Assembly: GCA_020891255.1 (NCBI GenBank)
Contig: BQFW01000002.1
Span: 3,410,001 to 3,474,000, forward strand
Source of the DNA: Entomortierella parvispora E1425
Taxonomy: Eukaryota > Fungi > Mortierellomycota
Reading direction: 5' to 3'
DNA: 64,000 nt
In this document: in pieces, positions 4,056 through 62,257 of the stretch
Layout of the letters: every line of letters starts with the position of its first letter
Position numbering within the stretch: the first letter of the stretch is position 1
Notes under the pieces: model-generated
Told to the model about the DNA's origin: nothing
The model's database searches: none
What the model saw: only the letters and a program-made list of their open reading frames with translations
Program-made: the position numbers and the translations under genes

Positions 4056-6327
4056 CCGTGCTCCAACTCAGCACCTCGTTGCCCTTTCATAAGCCAGCCT
4101 TCAGAGTGCTGTAAGGGAGTCAGGGCAACCCACTTGGCCCGCCGTCTGTCTTCCTACGGAGAGTGAAAACAGCAATGAAAGGAAGACAAGAGTACTCAGT
4201 CCGTAGGTTGTTCGCGTAGTCTGCAGCCGACAGGGAGTGACTATTGGGTTCTTTGTGCTCGGAGCCGAGACAAAAGAGACAATAGACCACGATCAAGTCA
4301 GTCGTGCGTGAGCCACGACAGAGAACAGGGCGAATATGATGCGATATCGTGCTGGCTGCAAGACAAGCGCTGTAGGCGTCTTTCTCTGTCTCTGCATCTC
4401 TCTACGAAAAAGACAAAAAAAAGAACCTTCTCCCCTCGCATTGGCTCAACATGTGCCCAACCCAGGTCAACTTGCGTGGGAGGGTATTATTTTCTCTCGC
4501 TGTTGGGTCGATATCGAAAGCCCCTTCATAAGCGGATATCCATTCCATTGGCTAGAAGACGCGCTCAAAAACAATTGACTGACCCTTTCTGGTCCAGATA
4601 GGACATCGTCTACGTCCTCAATGGCATTTTTACGTGGTGACGGGACAAAAAAAAATATTCAGAGGCAGCGGCATGCACACCACAGATGAAATTGCGTCAA
4701 AGCAGGGGGGTTGGGTCGGGTCATGGACCTTTAGCCAGTCTGATGCAACACAGCAGGAAGGGAAGGGGGTTTTTTTCAGGTTGAGAGCATTCTTATTTCA
4801 TCCAGACAGAGATTGAATTGGGTGAGGAGGGTCCTACTCTATTTTAATTTCCATGCCCGACACGCACTTGGTCCATCGATACATGCTTGCTTGCGCCAGT
4901 GAGCCACTCTGATGTGGCAAGCAACCCCTCATGTTTGTTCTCCTCCCTCCTTGTGACGGAAGGCGCCGTTGTGCCATCTTCTTCAACAGACACTTTTTCT
5001 TTCGCCACCGCGTTATATTCTTTTAGACTGCAAGTACCGAGAATCAAGGATTAAAGACTTTCCGGACGATGATGATCATCGAGAACACAGCATGTGCGGT
5101 TCAGACAAACGTGTAGCAATAGTGGATAATCTGCAGATGGTGTAACAAACGGCGGACCAAAATGACGGATTGTGGATGTCCTTACTTTTCGCATTCTTTC
5201 CTTCTGTTTCCCTCCGCTTCGATCATTAAAAATGTTGCTAAGGAGAAGCGGTAGTCGCAGTCAGACTCACTTTGATTGTCGACTCCCCTCGTCTACCTTG
5301 TGAAAAGAAGAACTTTTCATGTGAGTTGTTGGTAGAGGGCAACGGAGGAAAAGTTAATGTTGCCATTGACCCCCTTCCATCTTTGTGTCCTTTCAAATAC
5401 TCTTCCCTCGGAGCTATTGATTTCGGACGACAGCCTCTCCCAAGTCTTGAGAGATTGCCTTACCCATTATCTAGCGATAAAGAAAAACAAACAACGAGTG
5501 GCGAGGGATGGTGTCCTTTATTTTCATCTCCGCCCTCCCGAAATGTTGCCATGTCCTGCTGGTCTGCTGGTCGAGTTTGGCGTAATAATACGCTTTTGGT
5601 CCTGTCGAGTGCTCGTGCCCTCCTTCCTCTACCATCAACCATTTTGCCCCCGTGCCATCGGTAAATAAGCAGGAATGAACTTGTCCTCCAAGGTGGTGCT
5701 AAGAATGACAAACGAGAGACAGCTACTGCGATGGAGTCTACTAGACTGTACTGACAGAGTAGATCCACCAGAGACATGCATAGACCTAACGGCACAATCG
5801 GTATAAAGTGAACAATAACGTGTTCTTCTATCGCAAGGTACCTGGAGCATTGAGAGAAAAAAAAAGTGAAAACGCGCTTTTTGATCCGGAGTTGTCTGCA
5901 CTTTCCCACGCCTCTCCGACACTTTTTTTTTTTGTGAAGTCCGCTGGTTCTCCAACCGGCGATGAGCCTGCTGGCGGAAAAAGACCATCGCTATTTGTCT
6001 TTGAACTGACTGGCCTTGAAGAATGGAAGACTTGACGTCTCAGACAGAGTCAGGCATACGACGGGATAATGCTTGTCGAGATAACGGCATAGCAATTGGT
6101 TTATTTTTATTCATAATCATTCATTTTTTTGGGTGAGTAGGTCCTGTTTGCTTCCCTTCCTTTTTTGTCAAAAGCGATAGTATACAACAATTACGAGAGG
6201 AAAGAGATATAAAGGTGTTAAAGAGAAACAATAGGCGATAAAAGGGTAGGAGCTATATAGGTATGTGGGGAAGAGGTGTGTGTGGGGGAGAGAGAGAAAA
6301 GAGAGGGAGGGACAAAAATCATCATCA

Positions 6328-18715: not shown

Positions 18716-21700
18716 TTACGGCCTTGCCACTCGCCTGGGTTCGCCAGCAATAGTCGCACGCTTATATCCTTGCTTTCGATCCGCAGTCGGCCCCAGCGAA
18801 TCTCTACCTCTTGTTGACGCCGAATATGACGAGTTTGGTGATTGTCCAGCAATGCCGCCACCGCCAATAGATCCCCGAGACCCAATCGATCGATTGTATC
18901 CATATCCTCCTTGGACTGAAGGACGTCTCTCCGAAGACGAATATGTCGTCGATTCTCCTTCTGCAAAGGACACTGAAGGCGAGGTTCCTTCGCGTTGATC
19001 CTGTACAGCTGCGTCTGAAGCAGAATAGTTTTTCAAAGAGGGCCGTCGTGGCCCCCCAACGTTGCCACCGCTCTCCGAGTTCGAGGCTTTATTTTGATGG
19101 CGCTCATCGCCATGATCGACGCTGCCGTTTCTGATCCGCTCTTGAGGGGTCTCGATCTCCCTTTCGACACAGAGTCGTCCAAGAGCACCATCTCCATTCC
19201 TGCTCAAGATTTTAGCTGCTCTCATAAACTCCCCTCGAATAGTGAACAGGCTAGATTTGTAGTGAGAGAAGATACGGTTAATTAAAGCAAGCAATAAGTG
19301 TGTTGCAATCGTCAATGCCCCCTTTAGTTTGAAAACAACACTCTCTTTGGACTCACCTGAAGCGATCAACAGGTCTGCCTACGTTATGGTTCAACTCTGG
19401 GAGAGGAAATAGTGAAAGATACGAGTATTAGTAACCTTGATTTACCAAAAGGCATGGGTCATCAATAAATAACTGTCATACCGAATGGATCTTCAATGCA
19501 GAACAAATATCTGTTCTTCACAACAGGCGGTCTGTTTTCTGGTGGCGCTGAGGAAGCCGTCTGCTGATCAGACGCCTCCCCTTCTTTAGGCGATACCGGA
19601 GCATCAGGTTCTCCCTCTGTTGGCGATGCTTCTGCCTCAGGCTGCTGTAGAGGATCCAGAGGCTGTGAATCTTCGGATGGCTGAGACTTGTCCTTTGGTT
19701 GCGTTTGTTGTTTCTCTTGTTGCTGGTCTTGACGTTGCTGCTGATTTTGCGGTTGGGTGTGCTAAATGAAGGAGGATTAGAGTCAGATCGAATGCAACAA
19801 GATAACCTTTAAGTACGGGTTCGGTGTCCTTACATCCTTTGTCCACTCTTTCTCTTCCTTGGTCAGGAGTCCTCCCGATCGGATGCTGACAGCGTGGGTG
19901 GTGTATTTGAAATCACTGGCATAGTACCTGAAGAACTCATATAAGAGCTCTCCGACAGACTGCTGCAAGCCTTCAGGCGTCGGCTGCCAGTACCGTCCCA
20001 GATTGGCCACATCCTCAAAAAAGTAGCGGTTGAACCCCTGGCAGTCCCAGATCGGAATGTCGCCATCCCCGGGCACGATCGATTGCAGATTAGGAAGGAC
20101 GCCTCTGCGCTGCAACACGTGGATAACCAGTAGCACATACGCGTAACTAGAATTGTGGGAGGTCAGAGTAGTTGTTAGTCCCACATCATCGCTTTTCCGC
20201 ACCGCCGCAAAGATGGACGACAAACAGCTTACCTTGACAGTGAGCCAGTGTAGGGATTGTTGATCTTTCTGCGCTTGGCCCAGTGCTTGACAATCACCAC
20301 AATGTCGCGAACACGACTGTCAATTTTGCAATACGCTCTCAAAAGACGCGTGTTCCAAATCGCCAAGTCATTCTGGTATCCAATATCACAGGCGATTCCG
20401 TTGATATGATTCAGCTTCACAATGGGGACTCGGGCGCGCTTCAGCTGCAAAATGTTCTCAAAGTCGGGATCCTGTTCCAGACGATTTCCTATCCGCTCTA
20501 CAAACTCCACTGGCGAAACCTCATCTGCACCTTCCTCGCTGTTCAGGAAAACACAGACATCCATATCTGCGTTTGCAAGGGCCAATCCATTGCCGGAAGA
20601 TCCAAACGGGAGAACCTCAGCTTCGCCAAACACTTCTGTAGCGATGTCAGACAACCTGATATTAAATATGTTAGATACCAGTAACCAAGATCAAAATCCT
20701 AATAATCCAAGCACTCATCAACACCAGTACATACTTTTGAAGAAGAGCAATTTTTCTCGTTTCCTCTTCTGCTTTGGGGTGGAGTTCTTGACACAGGCGC
20801 TCTGCATCCCGACTGATTTGCTCAAACGTATGAAACGACGGCCTGTAAGGATCATACTTCTTGTCCGAATAGAAGTCAATATCCTTCACAGAAAATCGCG
20901 ACTTGGTAGTCGAGGGTTGATATCTAGGCTGTTCTCCTTGAGCTGAAGGATCCTGGAAACGGCGGTCGAAAAAGCTGGAGCGTTGCTGAGAGGTCGAAGA
21001 TGAAGGCGTCAGAGAGTCTCTATTCGCCTTTGAGCCGCCCGTGGAGGCTCTGGCACTTGGTGGCGTAACTGGGTTATCAAGAGAGAATCTTCTGAATTGA
21101 CCTATCAACTCTCCTGTCTGCGCTTGCTCAATCTCCTGGACAGTCAGAACCTGCCCTCCAGGGACAAGTGGAGAGGGGGCTGCTCCCATGGACGGTCCAC
21201 CACTATTGAGGAGCTTGTTGATCTGGTTTTCGATCGCCTGTACCTCCTGAGAACGAGGCCTTTCCTTGCTGCCTTGCTGTTCTTGCAGTCCATGTTGCTG
21301 ATATTCCTCGGGTTTCCTTGGTCCCGAGGGACTTTGCTCTCCTACATTCCGTTCAGATTGATGGAGAGACGACTCGAACGACTGTCCTGCACGCTGCTGC
21401 TGTTGCTGCTGCTGTTGTTGGTGTTGACGTTGCATCATTTGTTGGTGTAAAAACATTTGATGTTGCATTTGGAGGTGTTGCTGATGCTGCAAATGCTGCT
21501 GCTGCTGGTGAAAGTGGAACTGAGGCTCTTGATCCGGTCTAGGAAAATGTCCAAATCCTGGAGGAGGCGTCATCGAGTTCATGGGCATGAAAATAAGACC
21601 ATTTGGTGTCTGAACTGGGACCATAGGGGGCATCTGACCACCAAACTCCTTTTCGAATCCTGGAGGTCCCAGTCCGCTACCCCTGTTGAACATGGAGCCA

Positions 21701-22269
21701 GTTTGATGTGGTGGTCCTGTAGGCTGCGGTGAATTGTTTGCGTTTCGATGGATTGCATTTCCTTGGTCAGTCAAAGATACACTATCGGCCTTTGGAGCGC
21801 CCGATCGAAGCGTCTGATCATCAACCATCCGCTGGCCATCTTGCGAGAGCAAACTAGTTGCTTGGTTATTGGACGGCGAGGAAGCTCGGTCGGCATCCGA
21901 AGAGAAAGGATGAGGGCCAGCACCGAAATAAGGAGACTGCTGTCCATGGAACATTTGCTGTTGCATCATGTGGTGATGTTGCTGTTGTTGCTGCTGCATC
22001 ATTTGTGCAAGGGCTGGATGCATAAAGGGCGGCTGGAAGGGTGAATTTGATCTCTGATGGGGGTTCATCCCCTGGCCTAGTTCTCCGTCGTCATTGGGGC
22101 CAGGTCCGGGGAAGGCATGCATGGGGAACGTGGATTGTTGTGGAGGCAGACCCTCCTGGTAATGTTGCTGCAACTGTCGACGGGGATCCTGGCCTGATGC
22201 AAATGCATCCCGCGGCAACTCTTGATCACCCATTGGTTGGTGGGCCTGTTTCGAGGGCGGCTGTGCCAT
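18716..22269 (-). CDS. Cid1-family terminal RNA nucleotidyltransferase (predicted terminal uridylyltransferase) with Q/P-rich disordered N-terminus
   Basis: PFGSSGNGLALANADMDVC (DxD at 20559-20567), ARVPIVKL, IACDIGYQNDLAIWNTRLLRAY, VKHWAKRRKINNPYTGSLS, LSSYAY-like helix and spliced IEDPFELNHNVGRPVDRFSLFTIRGEF (PAP-associated domain). First true ATG at 22269; the ORF-track start at 22323 is GTG. Confidence 0.9.
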
Positions 22270-22644
22270 TTGGTGGCGGGCTGGAATCAAAGACGCGCTC
22301 TCTGGAAGGGATGCGCGCAGCACACAGACTCTTTTACAGACACACGCGCTGGAAGGTGAAGGAAAAGGAAAACAGGGACCTCAGTGGAACGTAATGGGGT
22401 GATGTTGGCCTGCAGGAGTCGAAGCGCGCGCAATGTGGAAAAGAAGTGTGCCCTTGCAAACGCATGCATGTGCCTCCCTGCTTTGGCTCCAAAGGGTGTT
22501 CCCTCGGACAAGGCATGAGTCTGCCGCACAAGCCACCGAAGCTCAGCCCGCCAAGGAAATGCGCCACCAAAAATTTGGAAGTCACTCTGAAATTTCGGAA
22601 CGGATGGTACATGGTCCAAGCCAAAAGAACATATATCACAATAA

Positions 22645-22907
22645 GGGTCTACGCTGCTCTGTGGGAGTTTTGCCGCTCCATTACACTTTGCAAGCCGGGT
22701 TCGACACCCGGTGTAGACTCCTTATGTCAGGTTATGCAGTATGACGCCCCTCCCGCTGTAGGCCTATCCTCGAGGGGGGCGGTGAGCCTTCACCCCTGCG
22801 CTGGCCAGCAGAGTAAAGGGTGTGGTGCCTATCACTGGGGGGAGTCGAGCGGTCCCATTCGGGGCCGCTTGAACTCTTGTTCCCGGGGCCTAATACTTTC
22901 TTCTTTT
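22645..22907 (+). ncRNA. Candidate Pol III structured RNA, copy A (tRNA-like head, hairpins, oligo-T end); family unknown
   Basis: B box GGTTCGACACC 22698-22708 in a 5-bp T-arm stacked on a 9-bp stem (GGGTCTACG/TGTAGACTC); degenerate A box CTGCTCTGTGG; strong hairpin 22842-22876 whose G-U pairs favour the + strand; T4 at 22904-22907; colinear homology with 59005-59295. Confidence 0.6.
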
Positions 22908-24033
22908 CTTTTCACCACATGGCTCATGGTTCCCACTCCCATGTCTCCATGGCATCCCTGATGTCACCAGAACTCTCTTGTCCTCAATCAATCAATCGCG
23001 TACCACACGCAATTTTAGTGGCGCGACTTTTTTTGGGCTCAGCTCACTGCCACGGAGGTCAACGTTCATGGTGCCATGGTCAATGCTTTTGGGAATGGAG
23101 ACAAGGCTGATTGTTTGCGTTTTCACTGCTGTTTATTATTACTTTCTTTCACTCTCAACTACTCTCGAAATCTGGCCTGCTCTCAGTCAACTTGTTTTCC
23201 TCCTTCTCTTTGACAAGCAAGAGTGAAACAAGCCGTGCAGGGCGCGCCAACGAGCAGGCGGCAGGCCATCGCACCCCAATAATAGTTTGCATGTACCATA
23301 AAGGACACGTCTTTTTTGGTTTGTATGGACAACCCCACGAAAACCATACGCTTTTGCCAAAGACTGGTTCGGAAACCAACCCAAGGACTCTGTTGGACCA
23401 TGATGTTGCCTGAGCAGAGCACCTATAAACACCTTCTTCATAAACACCTCCAGTATTGCACAGTGAAAAGGGGGGATAGGAACCAGAGGGCCACAATTCC
23501 CGTCTCATCCCGGTGAGAAAACAAAGATGCGAGCGGATCACCTTCTCGACTTTGTAGTGGACATTTGCCCTTCCCCTCTCGAACGTAGACCGCGACTTTA
23601 TCTACTTGTCCAAGAGGGTTGAAGAAAGGACGGTTGAAAAGGATTGCGATGGTGCTGGCACACAACCTTCTTATACGGTCAACACCCAACGGACCCCCGT
23701 TATGGAGGCTGCACCCAAGTTCCAGGTGCCGTTACAAGACGTACACCCGGGAAGTCCGTTGATTCTCAGGATGGCGCAGCAGAACGAGTCATGTCCACAC
23801 CCAGCCTTACCTGGCAGCACATCGCAAGTAATACGCAAGTCTAGGGGAAGGGGAAATGGAGCGGAAAGGGGGAATGAAAAGGAAAGAACAGGTGGACGAT
23901 TGGAAGGGAGGTGGATGGGTGGAATGAATGAAAATGAGGACAATGCGATTCCATCATGGAAAATTGATTTTTATTTTGTTGCGTGGTTGAAGTTCTCGGT
24001 GTTGATGCTCTTTGGTTCGCCTTGATGAATGAA

Positions 24034-26336
24034 TCAATGACCAAGGAGGGCTGCAAACGTCTTGTTCATGAACATGCCTTCAGGGTCGTACTTCCTACGG
24101 ATCGCCTCAAACTCATCCAAACGACCGCCCGTCTGCTGTCGCAGATAGGGCACGATGCCTGGGACATGTTCCCACATCTTGGCCCAATGGGGTCTATTCA
24201 CGATTAGACCGAACAATGATATTAGATACTGCATCTCAACAATTGCCATAAAGTTTCAACCTCTCCTCAACTTACTTTGCTTGGAACTTATCCATCCAGT
24301 ACTTGCCTACTCGGGCAGAGAAATCCTCGTAGCCCTTAGTATTGATCACAGAGAGGATCTCGATCATACAAAAGATCGCGTCTTTGTCTTCGTCGTACGC
24401 GCTTGACAAGGTCATATCCGATGCCTTGACGAACCTCATCTCCATCGTTAGATTCAGCGAGTAGTTGTTTTGGCCTGCCTCTTTGTAGATCTAGGAGAAA
24501 GATTGCACCTTCCGTCAACAGCAGCCATTCAGGTACTCTGGAAATGTACCGTCTCAACATCAGCAGCAAACATACCTGGTCAATCACGTAGTTCCAAGCT
24601 AGTACCACATTCTCAAAGTTATCGTCGGCCTTGAAGGCCATCTCCATATCCAAGCCTACACATAGATCGAACAAACGAAAGCATCAGTGTCTGTCAAACA
24701 ACAGCAACTTTGTCTCCTTTGTCTGATTCCCACCCTCTTGTCCCACAACTCGATAGCTGTGCACCCCTCCCTTTCGGTCTTCAATGTCGAGCGTTCCTCC
24801 CATGAACATGAATTGTAGACTTACAGGGGATGTTGTCAATGCCGGCCTGGTAATGAATCGCGTCAGGAGCTTGCAAGACCTTTTCGGAATCAGACTTCAT
24901 CACCGTGAAGATCAGGCAATCCAAAAACGGGGTGCAGCTCGGGTTCTGCGCCATGAACTCGTACAACTTGTCTCCAAAAGTTGTCTCCAAGTTTTGAGTG
25001 ACCTGCAAAAACTTTTCTTGGTCGGGTGATACCGTGACAGGCAAGGTCGATCGTTGCCATTGCTTGACCCACAAATGATCGTTGGAGGCACCTAAACCGG
25101 AGGTGTTGAAGGGCCAGTAAAAGATCTCGGTCGATTGGTTCCCGAGAACCATGGCCTTGATCTTTGGACCGCCGACCTGGGGGGATTCAAAGTAGTCGCT
25201 CAATGGAGGGAATGTGTCGGTCTACCCAAAACAATTTTGTGGGGAAAGGTATAAATGTGCAAAAAAAAAAAAAAAAAGTGGATTTTCATGAACGAGCATG
25301 TTAGTAAAGTTGTTTCTTCTCTTTTCGATCACACGAAAAGAGACGGCTACTCTATGTTACCATGTGCAGGTTGAACATTGGCTCAACATTCATAGTGTAG
25401 CTGTAGATGATCCCGAATAAACCGAGGTTGATGACCGCAGCTGCAAACTCCTTTGGGTCCTTTTCCCTTGAAAAAGTGTTTAAGACCCCGTGGGCATCGA
25501 TGATCTTGACTTCGCTCACAAGGTCTGGGAGCGTTCGGGTCTCGGTTGCTGCTCCGTGCTAAAGAGAAAGAAAGACAGGGAGAACGAGAAAAATAAGAAT
25601 CGGGGTCATAACTGCTATTGTGGGGCGTGCTGCTGTGTAGTGTGGAAACAAGAAGACTGATCATGAGTACAACGTACACATCCTAATGACAGGATACCAC
25701 CGTATCGGACCTAAGATCAGGGTTTATGTAGAAGGAGGGGGCATTTTAGTTTTCTCAAAGAATCATGGCCTAGCCGCACCCATAATGGCTTACAGAGTCC
25801 AGGACAACGTTGGATGGCAAAGCGAGGGGTGGGTCATGAGCACGCAGCAAGTCGTCCAAGTCCTTCACCAGGACACCGGTTTCCATCTCGACCGTCCATA
25901 CATCACCCTCGACATGAACCGGGGCATAGATCTTTTTCATGTCGTTCACTATGACCAAGTAGCCGTCGCTCTGAATTACTGATGAAGACGACCAAGTGTG
26001 ACCTGTGGCCGCACATCGGATTTTTTTCTTTGCCTCAGTGGCCTGTTGCACAATCGCAAACAGCTCCGTCAGAGTCGTAGGGTGGAAGATCTGAGCTGGC
26101 ACACAAGTCTGGTTGCCAGCCCAATTGGACCACGCGTTCGGATTTGGTGCTGCCATGTTGCGATTACTGTTGTCGTTGTCGCTAGAGGGGATTACGATGG
26201 GGTGGGCAGCCACTTGAAGCCCCTCCACCTGGGAATCGACAGATACACGCTCTCGACTTTTTTTTCCTTCCTTGGAATGGGAAGTGAGATCAATGATGTC
26301 CTTTTTCAGACGACGGATGAACGTGTTGAAGGTCAT
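24034..26336 (-). CDS. FAD-linked oxidase, D-arabinono-1,4-lactone/L-gulonolactone oxidase-like
   Basis: WSNWAGNQTC, RCAATGHTWS (covalent-FAD His motif), VRYGGILSLGC|HGAA, NLGLFGIIYS, TMEMRFVKAS and C-terminal RPHWAK; at least six introns. Confidence 0.88.
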
Positions 26337-58405: not shown

Positions 58406-59004
58406 ATAGGGAAAAAAAGAATTGATCGTACTTCTTCCTCCCCTTTGTCTCTGATCGTGTCCATGTCCCTTTGAATAAACGCGCCCCGCCTTTGGACATG
58501 CGATCCGCTGGCGTGGTCGTTTTTCAATACCTACTCACCAATGCTTTTCCAAAGCACCATTTAACAATGATACATGTACCATCCTCAACTGCCCTGCGCG
58601 CTGTCAGCCTCCCCCAGCTTTCCTGAAATCGCGCACTTGAAGTCTTGGGGGAGAAAGGGGATGGGGGTTTGGTGAATCGTGTTTGATGAATGAACCCACC
58701 TCCACGCTTTGGAGGTCCAGCCTCAGATGACCTGAAGAGTGGTAAAGTCACTGATCCTCTCACTTAAAGACAATGGCATTGAGCTTTCCTTCTAATCAAT
58801 GACTGCATGTCGTGAGCATGCCTCACAGAGACAGAAGAGATGACTCTGCAGGGACCAGTGCAGAAAGAGCGAGAAAATCTGGGACCTAGTCCACAAGTTG
58901 CCCTTTTTTTTTGGGCGTGCTTCGCCCATGCCCCCATGGTCAATGGTTCAGGTCACGTGAAAAATCGATACAAAGGGCATTGACCGCAAATTTAATTGAG
59001 TGAA

Positions 59005-59295
59005 GGACTATGTGTAGTGTAATGGGAATTCAACCGCCTATGAAGCTGCACGCCTGGGTTCGAATCCGGGCTCGGGTCTAGACTTTACTCACCATTTGCT
59101 ATATACATACGTCTCTCCCCGGTATATAGGATGGCCTCTCGGGAGAGCTGTGAAGTTGGTACACATGCCCGTTGGTACGTGATACCCGTTGGTACGTCAT
59201 AACTGCGAAAAGCGGCGGCGTAGCATGCTCATGAAGGGGGAGTCTAGTCACCTGGAAAGGGTGGCTAGATTTCTTGCTCCAGGATACTTCTTTTT
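59005..59295 (+). ncRNA. Candidate Pol III structured RNA, copy B (tRNA-like head, hairpins, oligo-T end); family unknown
   Basis: Consensus A box TAGTGTAATGG 59015-59025 and B box GGTTCGAATCC 59057-59067 at tRNA-like spacing, but acceptor, D and anticodon stems do not pair. No T4 run until TTTTT at 59291-59295. Hairpins 59111-59148 and 59236-59275; colinear with 22645-22907. Confidence 0.62.
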
Positions 59296-60374
59296 CCTTT
59301 GCTTCTTGACAAAAAGGAAAAAAGAGAAAGCCTCGATTGAAGATCTTCAAGGTGTGATCCAAATGTTTGGTGGCGTCTTTTTTTTTTTTTTTTTTTTCTG
59401 TCTGGGCTCAACAGTGGGCATTGCGTTCAAAAAGTTGCAGGTGCATGCAATGCTGAATGCCGCCAGGAATGAATTAAAGTTGACCATTAGCATGGTTGTT
59501 GAGTTTTGCACTCTGCTTTCTGAGTTTTGAAAGTGGATACGGTGGGCACCGTTCGCTTTCACGCGCCTAAAGGGTGTTGAGGTGTTGAAAAAAGGAAGCG
59601 CAGCCGGCGCGGGGGAACCTTGTAGCGTTGGAATGGCCTGGACCCAGCGATATGAGGGAATCGCGCTCTGACCGCGACACTGGTGCTCAGGTCCTTCCCA
59701 ACGTTCGCGATGCTCTTTTTGCAGATGGACGGTCTCTGCTAGGAACGTCTCGCCGTTTTTGCCTTGTCCTCTTCTTTTCTTTACTTTTTTGAGCACCATA
59801 CCCAAAGCCCACGATCATCAACCCATAAAGATCAAGATAGTGTGAAGGATGTCCAGCTGTTGCAACAAAGCCTGACCCGGTCCCCAAGATCTCAGAGATC
59901 TGCAAAGAGTATCTATGGAAAATTGTCCGGAATTCTTTCGCGCTATACTCGAGTTCACGGGGAGGATGGGAAAAGGAGAGGGGAAGGGGGAGCGAGGAAG
60001 AGGTGCAGGAAAACGGAACAAGGATCAAAGAACGTGGAACGAGGGCTAAGAGTTAGCCAGAGGGATAGGAGATCATGGTTGAGAAGAAGGGAGAGGGGTG
60101 AAGGAAAGGAGTGGACGTGAGGAAGGGGGTGAAGAGGTAAGGGGAGAAAAGAGTGGAATGTGATGCATCTCAGAATGGGTCACGCAGCTTTGAGGGCACT
60201 GTCGCATGGAGCCGAGGTAAGCAGGGAGAGAGGTAAGGTGGCTGACTTGCAGGTTGCAGGAGTCCTTATTCTTGACGTCGACGTCCCTGGTCTCCACGCA
60301 CTCACCGGATGCTACTGATGATAGAATCTCGTTTATTGCAATAACAATACGTTCAAAATTGGATCAGACAACAA

Positions 60375-62257
60375 CTACGCACTCTCCGACTGGCCGCTTT
60401 CACCTGCAGCCGCAGCCGCAGCGGCGGCCGCTGCCATCTCAGCTTCCCTTCCTTCAATGGTCTCGCCCTTGATCGTATCAATGATATCGCCCTCAATGCT
60501 CAAGAAGCCCACTTGGTTGCAGACGCGAACTACTTCCTCTGCCAACTCGACGCTCATGTTGCCAAGAGACTTGTTCACATTCTCCAACGATCCAGAAATG
60601 ATGGCCTCCTGGAAATCCTCTGGAAGAGCCGCAAAAATCTCGTGAATCTTGGGATCGGCATCGGCTGGGGGTCCTGTGATATGGATCTGTGTGCCTGGAT
60701 CAGCAGCCTGAAGTTGGATCGTTTCTACACCAGCAGGGGAAGCAATCTCAGGACGCTCCTGTGCCATGACGTTGCATCGTTCCTTGATTCGGTTGTATGT
60801 GTCCTTCCAGTCATTTTGGAAAATCTTCAGTGCTGCGTGAGAGTTGTCACGAATTCTATTGTGGTTAACATAAAAAGTTGAAAGATGTCAGTGTCAAGCA
60901 ATCCCTGTCCTCACTTGCCTTCCTATTGTTCCTCTCTCGTCTCCATGTCTTTCATCGAATCCACGAGCGTGTTATTATTTTTACCTGTGGAAAAAGAGAC
61001 CGACGCCATCCTTGCCCAACTGTGCGCAGTACTGCAAGATGAGGGCCTGGTGGACACAGTTGGAGGCATAGGCCTCATCGCCCTGGATTTGCGACTTGAA
61101 CGCCTGCGCCATAATTTCGTCCGAGTACTTTTGAGTGGCGAGATAGGGATGCTTGGAAATGTAGACCAAGGATGCGTCAAAACCCTTGGTGTGTGAGAAC
61201 TCCATTGCCGTCTGCGACACTTCGACTTCATCATCGTCGGAATCATCCGAATCAGCACTTGCGCTGCTTGCTGCTGCGGCCTTTGACTTTTCAGCGGCAG
61301 AAACTCCTCCCTAGGATAATAAGAGACGTGTCTTGGTTGGTACAAAAATATGATGTGATGCCTCCATTGGATGCACTTTTCTAGCAGTTACTTACAGCGC
61401 TTCCAGGGTTAAGAGTCTCAATCACTTTGGTCTTCTCAACAACCTTCTTTGGCTGCTTGACGGGCTCCTTGGGCGCAGGGGTGGCTTTGGTGACAGCCTA
61501 TGGAACAGCAGATCCATTTGAAAAAGAAAATACTAGTTAGTGAACGATTCGATCTCCACTGACGTTGTTCCAGTCGCTTGTGCCCTTTTCCTTGTAATCA
61601 CTAGAAAGCATGCGAAGATGGCATTGGGAGGGGGGGGGGGCAACCTACCGTCTTGTCAAATCCAGTGACGAGCTTGTCAGAGGTGAACTTTCTCTTCTCG
61701 ACCGTCTCCAACTTCTGCAACTGCTGAACAGTCTCTCTGTACTTCTTTTCGAGGTTGTCGATTTCAGCGTCGATTTGATCTTCAGTCTGAGCGTTTTCGA
61801 CCATAGAAGAGCTACTCTGTTGTATCCTGCCAAGCTGCTTCTTTAACGCCTCTGCCTCATGCTTCAAAGCCAAGATCTTTGTCCTGCGAGCATCGCGCTC
61901 GCGATGGAGCTGCTCCTGCTTCCATCGGATCATGGAGCGCTTGTCAACCTAGAGTACAAAATAGAGTCCACCCAAGATCGTTAGTCCATATGGTCTTGTT
62001 TAGGAGAGGTGCGGAAGTCTGGGGCAAATAATCAAAAGCCGTGGCGTAGGTATGCAGCAATATAAATCCTCCGCAGTTGGGGTTTGACTTGCTGCATACC
62101 CATCCAATATTGACAACACGCCTTGCAGTAAAAACCCAAACAATAGCGACACAAAGAATGAAAGAGAGAGCGATGGTCGTACGTTAGGATGGCATTCAAT
62201 GTCCGAGTCATCCGAGACCTCAAAGTCGTCCCATTTGGAGTAGTCGATGGCAGACAT
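60375..62257 (-). CDS. CDC37: Hsp90 kinase co-chaperone Cdc37
   Basis: MSAIDYSKWDDFEVSDDSDIECHPN (CK2-site SDD motif)|..MIRWKQEQLHRER..; middle domain YASNCVHQALILQYCAQLGKDGVGLFF; C-terminal KIHEIFAALPEDFQEAIISGSLENVNKSLGNMSVELAEEVV. Confidence 0.96.

Follow-up and report, generated by a model that had tools for sequence, protein, structure and literature searches.

A tRNA-headed structured element in two diverged copies in Entomortierella parvispora: a possible SINE-like module next to a candidate HDV-like ribozyme

Fungal tRNA-derived SINEs (SINE2 type) include MgSINE, and assignment to this class relies on dispersed copies, target-site duplications and a tail in common with a partner LINE. 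The element of Entomortierella parvispora described here resembles these SINEs in its tRNA-related head with boxes A and B, followed by an unrelated body of ~200 nt, in its conserved 3′ hairpin and tail region, and in its dispersed multi-copy state, with copies of different ages of which some are decayed. It departs from them in its homology, which, unlike that of a simple SINE, runs on for hundreds of bases past the T-rich end, in its low copy number, in the candidate ribozyme on the opposite strand that bounds the unit, and in that no target-site duplication can be assigned. BC1 RNA and the ID elements, as well as the rodent 4.5S RNAs, are tRNA- or SINE-related Pol III RNAs of proven expression; the present element appears to be comparable in being a small gene family and a source of repeats at once, within longer repeated units, while lineage and sequence are different and transcription of the E. 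parvispora element is predicted.

There are well-documented non-LTR retroelements, and deleted derivatives of such elements, whose exact 5′ end is formed by an HDV-like ribozyme (PMC3774820, PMC3414825, PMC3185411, PMC4035085). As in R2 and its SIDEs and in L1Tc/NARTc (same four reports), the 5′ boundary of the repeated unit coincides exactly with the candidate ribozyme here, the unit has no coding capacity and is situated downstream of a host gene in the same orientation, such that co-transcription and self-cleavage are plausible, and an A-rich (GAA)n tract is found on the same strand ~365-380 nt downstream of the ribozyme start. In contrast to these systems, a structured, tRNA-headed module of Pol III type lies antisense to the 3′ part of the unit, no ORF-bearing partner was seen at the locus, and the Rfam score of the candidate ribozyme is below threshold. 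Helenus/TRIMp3 elements are likewise repeats with a tRNA-derived Pol III promoter and no working tRNA, reported within the fungi from Pucciniales and a few Agaricomycetes, and not from Mortierellomycota (PMC10886601). [quoted passage not shown] Membership in this group was rejected on finding one head in the block, no internal direct repeat, and no TG...CA ends with a matching duplication. A further precedent is provided by dicistronic tRNA-linked Pol III genes, such as the plant tRNA-snoRNA and the Yarrowia tRNA-5S genes (PMC2566860), which have in common with the present element a tRNA-shaped 5′ promoter part that could be removed by RNase P/Z to free the downstream RNA; the tRNA is real in those genes, whereas the present head has an aberrant anticodon arm and is not recognized by any tRNA model. 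In a literature search no description of a SINE-like tRNA-headed family in Mortierellomycota was found. If the reading preferred below is correct, such a family in an early-diverging fungus would be physically coupled to a retroelement family headed by delta-type ribozymes, a concrete case for how Pol III modules and ribozyme-processed retroelements combine, and annotators should be aware that 'orphan structured Pol III RNAs' in the E. parvispora genome may be repeat-borne.

The window, i.e., the whole stretch of 64,000 nt that was analysed, contains an ORF of 681 aa which is identical (100%) to the RasGEF protein EMPS_01922 of E. parvispora, and a second gene matching EMPS_01930. It is located on record BQFW01000002.1 of assembly GCA_020891255.1, of which a retrieved annotated locus spans 3453822-3475523. 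Two elements were located on the plus strand, copy A (22645-22907) and copy B (59005-59295). Both genes flanking copy A are on the minus strand: one encodes a Cid1-type nucleotidyltransferase and starts near 22323, the other encodes an ALO-type oxidase, has its 3′ end towards the element and extends from 24034 onwards. Copy B is likewise intergenic, with a DUF7492-like gene on one side and, on the other, the minus-strand gene Cdc37, which has its 3′ end at 60375. A 171-codon open frame on the plus strand (22446-22961) spans copy A and looks accidental; its translation, when compared with 1.8 billion representative proteins, gave a single match, to an unrelated repeat protein. The features of copy A and its surroundings, with one block downstream of copy B, are the following.

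22609-22644, plus strand: upstream stretch inside the multi-copy block, common to a third copy (C)
22609-22619, plus strand: CATGGTCCAAG, upstream of the head of copy A
22631-22640, plus strand: TATA-like ATATATCACA, upstream of the head of copy A
22645-22721, plus strand: tRNA-like head with a cloverleaf-like fold (-31.8 kcal/mol)
22647-22653 and 22712-22718, plus strand: acceptor-like stem, 7 bp
22656-22668, plus strand: D-like arm, 4 bp
22695-22711, plus strand: canonical T arm, loop UUCGACA, B box GGTTCGACACC
22720-22744, plus strand: linker of 25 nt after the head, its length kept in A, B and C
22745-22782, plus strand: hairpin 1, a C-rich/G-rich stem with an inner AGG...CCU hairpin, found in A, B and C
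22780-22837, plus strand: middle domain closed by helix M (CGGUGA/UCACUG)
22838-22886, plus strand: terminal hairpin, 17 bp with one bulge, between the conserved single-stranded motifs GGGGGAGUC and CUUGYUCCMGG
22893-22913, plus strand: ATACTT, then a (TTC)n-like T-rich run with two T4 stretches
22914-23172, no strand assigned: rest of the putative composite unit, depth 6-10x
23014-23041, no strand assigned: block TTTAGTGGCGCGAC-T7-GGGCTCA, found also downstream of B and C
23173-23277, minus strand: candidate HDV-like self-cleaving ribozyme with G1 at 23277, folded manually as a double pseudoknot
23278-23828, no strand assigned: further repeated segment, 4-13x, non-coding, absent from copy C
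59366-59416, plus strand: TTTGGTGGCGTC-T19-...GGGCTCAAC block downstream of B, homologous in C and A

The ordered plus-strand blocks that the original prediction had reported as common to A and B were all found in place.

22662-22676 in A and 59023-59037 in B: TGGGAGTTTTGCCGC and TGGGAATTCAACCGC
22714 in A and 59079 in B: TAGACT
22745 in A and 59110 in B: CGCCCCTCCC and CGTCTCTCCC, exactly 25 nt after TAGACT in both
22838 in A and 59236 in B: GGGGGAGTC
thereafter in both: CTTGYTCCMGG, then ATACTT plus the T-rich run

A pattern for the B box and T arm matched twice in the window, in copies A and B only, and the motif GGGGGAGTCKAG is likewise confined to the two elements. Under strict local alignment the T arm alone aligns, and no better than controls. 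With permissive scoring of the whole elements, none of 1282 genomic control segments scored as high, the bodies without the tRNA-like head were likewise above all 1282 segments, and the alignment reached z values of 5.7-9.6 against shuffles, so that the comparison with shuffled and genomic controls came out in favor of the predicted homology. nhmmer with copy A as query recovered copy B at E 0.05, and the identity of the two is ~58%; judged by these scores, A and B are truly homologous, although distantly so. The extra length of copy B is mostly due to a tandem duplication of the 13-nt CCCGTTGGTACGT (59166-59196). The sequence upstream of A was compared with that upstream of B and with that downstream of A, and the ribozyme region with the sequence downstream of B; in none of these flank comparisons was the similarity above controls. 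Comparisons of structure and homology rest on three independent sequences (A, B, and C); MAFFT alignments of two or three copies misalign the T arm and the 3′ domain, hence the RNAalifold results were discarded and nhmmer profiles were used in place of a covariance model. Two short motifs recur nearby: TTTTTTTGGGC is present at three window sites (23028, 38003, 58906), the exact 12-mer CCATGGTCAATG at 23074 and 58934 only, and both co-occur only downstream of A (23028-23085) and upstream of B (58906-58945). This pairing is probably a rearranged or repeated piece of the unit, with the wider flank alignments not above controls.

In the terminal hairpin, 16 of 16 aligned pairs are maintained between A and B through 12 substitutions, with three to four pairs changed on both sides and two to six on one side, depending on the register; the probability of keeping all pairs under random placement is ~5e-6. 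In a count of paired cells the value is 100%, compared with 39-58% when the partner strand is slid, and four pairs are changed on both sides, with none in the slid controls. Each copy has four to five G-U pairs, which can form on the plus strand only, and the hairpin is more stable on this strand (-32.0 kcal/mol) than on the minus strand (-21.2). An uninterrupted stem of at least 16 bp was encountered in 0 of 418 control windows. The compensatory changes in the terminal hairpin, and the restriction of G-U pairs to the plus strand, were thus borne out. In hairpin 1, A and B differ by one pair altered on both sides and another altered on a single side; the compensation put forward originally is real, and the register pairing 22749 with 22778 is one of two possible in a run of G. 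The closing pair of helix M is A-U in copy A and C-G in copy C, with both sides changed, and five of its six pairs are kept in copy B, which retains hairpin 1, helix M and the 17-bp terminal hairpin. Folding per domain favors the plus over the minus strand by 6-18 kcal/mol, with the exception of hairpin 1, for which both strands fold equally well, and the head of A (plus ~4 kcal/mol better). For the whole elements, fold z-scores are -2.7 and -2.1 on the plus strand, compared with -1.7 and +0.3 on the minus strand. In view of the compensatory changes, the plus-only G-U pairs and the strand-biased folding, selection has maintained a plus-strand RNA fold in the lineages leading to A and B, in agreement with the original prediction.

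This fold could not be assigned to a described family. Rfam 15 gave no match at gathering score over the whole window, the families 7SK, vault, Y and snoRNAs included, and nothing except noise over both elements at E≤10, in agreement with the expectation that no described RNA family would match either element. The hallmarks of SRP, RNase P/MRP, U3, snRNA, 5S and telomerase RNA had been stated to be missing, and none of these families had an Rfam match. Readings as H/ACA, C/D, SRP or RNase P/MRP RNA were rejected, with no pockets or boxes seen by eye and no support from Rfam.

Promoters of Pol III type 2 are recognized by boxes A and B 30-60 nt apart and an oligo-T terminator downstream. The consensus of box B, GGTTCGANNCC, is perfect in both A and B, and that of box A, TRGCNNAGTGG, is matched at seven of nine specified positions in B and at four to five of nine in A. 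Copy B thus carries a good box A (TAGTGTAATGG) plus the B box, and its head is damaged: A is opposed to A at one position of the acceptor stem, the T loop is longer by one G, and 5 nt are inserted before TAGACT. In copy A the anticodon region is aberrant on inspection, being 3 nt too long, with no 5-bp stem and 7-nt loop. ARAGORN found no tRNA gene in the window and seven fetched loci, hence no parent tRNA for the head, and the Rfam tRNA model had no match over either element even at E≤10; a canonical tRNA gene was rejected on the basis of ARAGORN (0 genes), the Rfam tRNA model and the aberrant anticodon region. Upstream of A there is a TATCACA motif, which is also present at position 5702 of the contig carrying copy C. 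T runs downstream of the heads comprise T4+T4 in A and T5 in B, followed by T7 and T19; the distance from the start of the head to the strong T run is ~390 nt in A and in B. The T-rich run of copy A would be a weak Pol III terminator on the plus strand. On the minus strand it reads as a (GAA)n-like A-rich tract, which is longer in copy C, and the number of TTC repeats differs between strains (insertion behind 22897).

Assembled DNA contigs of E. parvispora were compared over 21400-24100, with depth taken as a proxy for copy number. Copy A was found to lie inside a multi-copy block of 1.25 kb (~22579-23828). Single-copy contigs have a depth of ~80 (79-80) and end on the left at 22608 (X1) or 22627 (X3), and the single-copy flank restarts to the right of the block at 23799-23828. 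Unitigs covering 22738-22892, 23013-23168 and 23255-23454 have depths of 270-320 and zero base differences (one gap in the last), and that covering 23496-23816 has a depth of 380 and four differences. The depth summed at ≥80% likeness amounts to ~870-930 in the head, ~320 in the middle domain and 470-770 downstream. The block is represented by ~4 copies identical over the contigs compared, besides several diverged ones, and there are ~10 heads at ≥80% likeness. The middle domain, at a depth of ~4x, is the least-kept part of the family, and in a deletion variant one contig joins 22767 to 22858, such that 90 nt of the body (22768-22857) are absent. A variant diverged by ~8% is collinear from the terminal hairpin into the downstream sequence. 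In the second strain X3, ~3% diverged in the flank, the block has the same left junction. As had been noted originally, there is no clear target-site duplication, A-tail or poly(A) around the elements; the 5-mers found are at chance level, and the ends of the element are undefined.

A third copy, C, was identified at 5714-6253 of L009, a 7.5-kb metagenome contig of a close relative, which had been retrieved with the Pex24-like gene as anchor. The genes on L009 have 73-84% DNA identity to those of the window, with the same order Pex24 ... Cdc37, and copy C occupies the same Cdc37-proximal intergenic region as copy B, in the same orientation; the intergenic sequences that precede the Cdc37 3′ end in the window and on L009 cannot be aligned. 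Copy C matches copy A with an nhmmer E of 5e-21 (4.5e-29 with flanks), and has no nhmmer match to copy B, which shares only the downstream T-run block. Homology of B and C is thus seen in 59366-59416 at 84-92% identity, with nothing significant beyond; the TTTGGTGGCGTC/GGGCTCAAC block gave E 4e-4 and 0.012 against L009 6026-6062. Copies B and C are decayed, copy C because it has lost ~20 nt of the head (box A region) and the 5′ arm of the terminal hairpin. The homology of A and C proceeds in collinear blocks, 22695-22812 (80%), 22989-23041 (77%) and 23165-23276 (73%), and then stops. It spans ~650 nt and crosses the T4 and T7 runs, at which a Pol III transcript would have ended, from which it follows that simple retroposition of a 265-nt Pol III RNA did not give rise to the copies. 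Across copy C runs a frame of 203 codons, called a 'gene' on metagenome contigs, which looks accidental; its homologues are only in its own cluster of contigs (99.6-99.9% identical). Among other Mortierellaceae, RasGEF-anchored loci of Gryganskiella, Mortierella alpina and Dissophora had lost synteny and had no element, and Pex24-anchored loci of Gryganskiella and Linnemannia had neither a Cdc37 neighbor nor an element. A metagenome scan with the tail pattern returned three matches, all in unrelated sequence of protein-coding character, i.e., chance.

The class of HDV-like ribozymes is defined by nested helices P1-P1.1-P2-P3-P4, a G at +1, a wobble or G-C closure of P1, a C in J4/2, and self-cleavage. 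For 23173-23277 on the minus strand all five helices can be drawn: P1 has 7 bp, with a G-U at the predicted cleavage site, P1.1 has 2 bp, P2 6-7 bp and P3 3 bp, P4 is long, and the 8-nt L3 is similar to its counterpart in HDV; J4/2 contains the C and, at 7-8 nt, is longer than usual. The Rfam model RF00094 matches 23279-23201 (minus strand) with 24 bits, below its gathering score of 50, and a ribozyme descriptor, written after the site had been seen, gave one match in the window against 0.1 per shuffled window. In copy C, P1 of the ribozyme contains two mismatches and P2 one or two, which is consistent with a dead copy. By three independent lines, position 23277 is at once the predicted cleavage site, the end of the A-C homology and the point at which high-copy contigs diverge; these have loose ends at 23228 and 23277, where they run into unlike sequence. 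The 50-nt core of the ribozyme reaches ~90x the single-copy depth over 23220-23310, which points to a sizeable family of retroelements with delta-type ribozymes in E. parvispora. A gene on the ribozyme strand immediately precedes the unit at A and again at the locus common to B and C, an arrangement to be expected if the unit is released from read-through transcripts. The 550-nt segment 23278-23828 is inserted exactly at the 5′ end of the ribozyme.

Taking together the homology, the strand-specific conservation of structure, the multi-copy state, the decayed copies, the composite extent and the ribozyme-like fold, all of them observed, A and B are read with moderate confidence as diverged members of a small dispersed repeat family, in which a SINE-like module, tRNA-derived and of Pol III type, belongs to a composite repeat of retroelement origin. 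The plus-strand module would consist of the tRNA-derived head (B box and T arm, acceptor-like stem, box A) and a body of ~190 nt with three helical domains, within a composite unit that measures 650 nt or more and would be ended by the opposite-strand HDV-like ribozyme, itself belonging to a retroelement family with ~90 genomic occurrences. TFIIIC and TFIIIB on the head would direct Pol III transcription of the plus strand from ~22645, with termination either in the T-rich run (22898-22913) or further on at 23028, where the T7 run lies, and the RNA would fold into the cloverleaf-like head and three helices. The part under selection would be the terminal hairpin with its conserved flanks, most likely a handle for a reverse transcriptase or another partner protein, as in SINE/LINE pairs. 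Cleavage at 23277/23278 may free the unit from read-through transcripts of the upstream minus-strand gene, the ALO oxidase at A and Cdc37 at B and C, and the freed unit would then be copied, in a mode that is conjectural. Several points speak against a composite repeat. Target-site duplications, poly(A) and defined termini were not found, the copy number is low, and the location of structured RNA and ribozyme on opposite strands is unexplained by the standard SINE model. The perfect 17-bp hairpin of B, at a locus shared with the relative, is odd for an old neutral relic; furthermore, the ribozyme is below the Rfam threshold, its descriptor was post hoc, and contig depth is only a proxy for copy number. 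A variant of the composite repeat, which we regard as improbable, is a retroelement-derived unit encoding two functional RNAs on opposite strands, namely a delta-type ribozyme at the 5′ end of the element RNA and an antisense, tRNA-headed Pol III RNA kept by compensatory evolution, the latter serving, e.g., as element helper, primer, silencing decoy or domesticated host RNA.

On the other hand, the elements could represent a family of cellular Pol III non-coding RNA genes, kept similar by duplication or gene conversion, with a separate retroelement landing on their T-rich terminators, an account that we consider rather unlikely; if true, it would provide a new Pol III RNA family with testable helices. 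The compensatory evolution of three helices on the plus strand fits such genes, yet it is equally expected for selected SINE-like master copies. The conserved spacing of head and hairpin (the linker in A, B and C), the ~390 nt from the start of the head to the strong T run in A and B, the common intergenic region and orientation of B and C, and the intact hairpins of B also agree with cellular genes. Their body should hardly be the least conserved part, as seen in the depth dip and the 90-nt deletion variant; B and C are damaged in promoter or structure, about four near-identical copies share 900 nt of non-RNA flank, and neither the other Mortierellaceae loci examined nor the metagenome pattern scan yielded a homologue. 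The original prediction had favored RNA genes over SINE insertions, and this part was not supported, with copy A inside a 1.25-kb multi-copy block, copies B and C decayed, and a homology with C that runs ~370 nt past the T-rich 'terminator' to the ribozyme site; what stood was a plus-strand, tRNA-headed element of Pol III type with compensated helices and no described family. Many decayed copies with target-site duplications and no covariation had been named beforehand as the signature of an ordinary SINE, and of these the decayed copies were found, together with covariation and no target-site duplications. A further option is that the 1.25-kb block represents a solo LTR-like unit, or else a truncated copy, either of a non-autonomous 'retrozyme-like' element built around delta-type ribozymes or of a TRIMp3/Helenus-type element with a tRNA-derived Pol III promoter in its repeat. 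In Helenus, fungal elements included, tRNA-like sequences with both boxes occur within the LTRs (PMC10886601), and the block exists in ~4-5 copies; a low probability is assigned to this option, as a second repeat, a PBS, a PPT and TG...CA termini with a duplication of 4-5 bp are all absent from the locus, Helenus LTRs do not exceed 323 bp, and the unit of copy C starts at the ribozyme, without the 550-nt segment. Decayed tRNA pseudogenes, with downstream similarity due to chance or common intergenic motifs, would explain why strict local alignment recovers the T arm only, and some flank motifs, e.g., TTGGTGGCG, are indeed common in the window. This reading was rejected as very improbable, contradicted by the homology of the body, which alone is above all 1282 controls, by the existence of copy C as a third homologue, and by a 17-bp hairpin kept through 12 substitutions, with stems of at least 16 bp in 0 of 418 control windows.

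Two further observations concern the intergenic DNA around the elements. Purine-rich tracts (GGA/GAA-type) on the plus strand, at 23843-23935, 59960-60140 and L009 6254-6400, sit between the unit and the 3′ end of the minus-strand neighbor gene at three of three loci. The motif TTGGTGGCG is over-represented in the window (30 matches with at most one mismatch, 13.7 expected), examples being 22562-22570 (minus strand), 23015-23023 and 59367-59375, and possibly represents a regulatory site that is frequent between the genes of E. parvispora.
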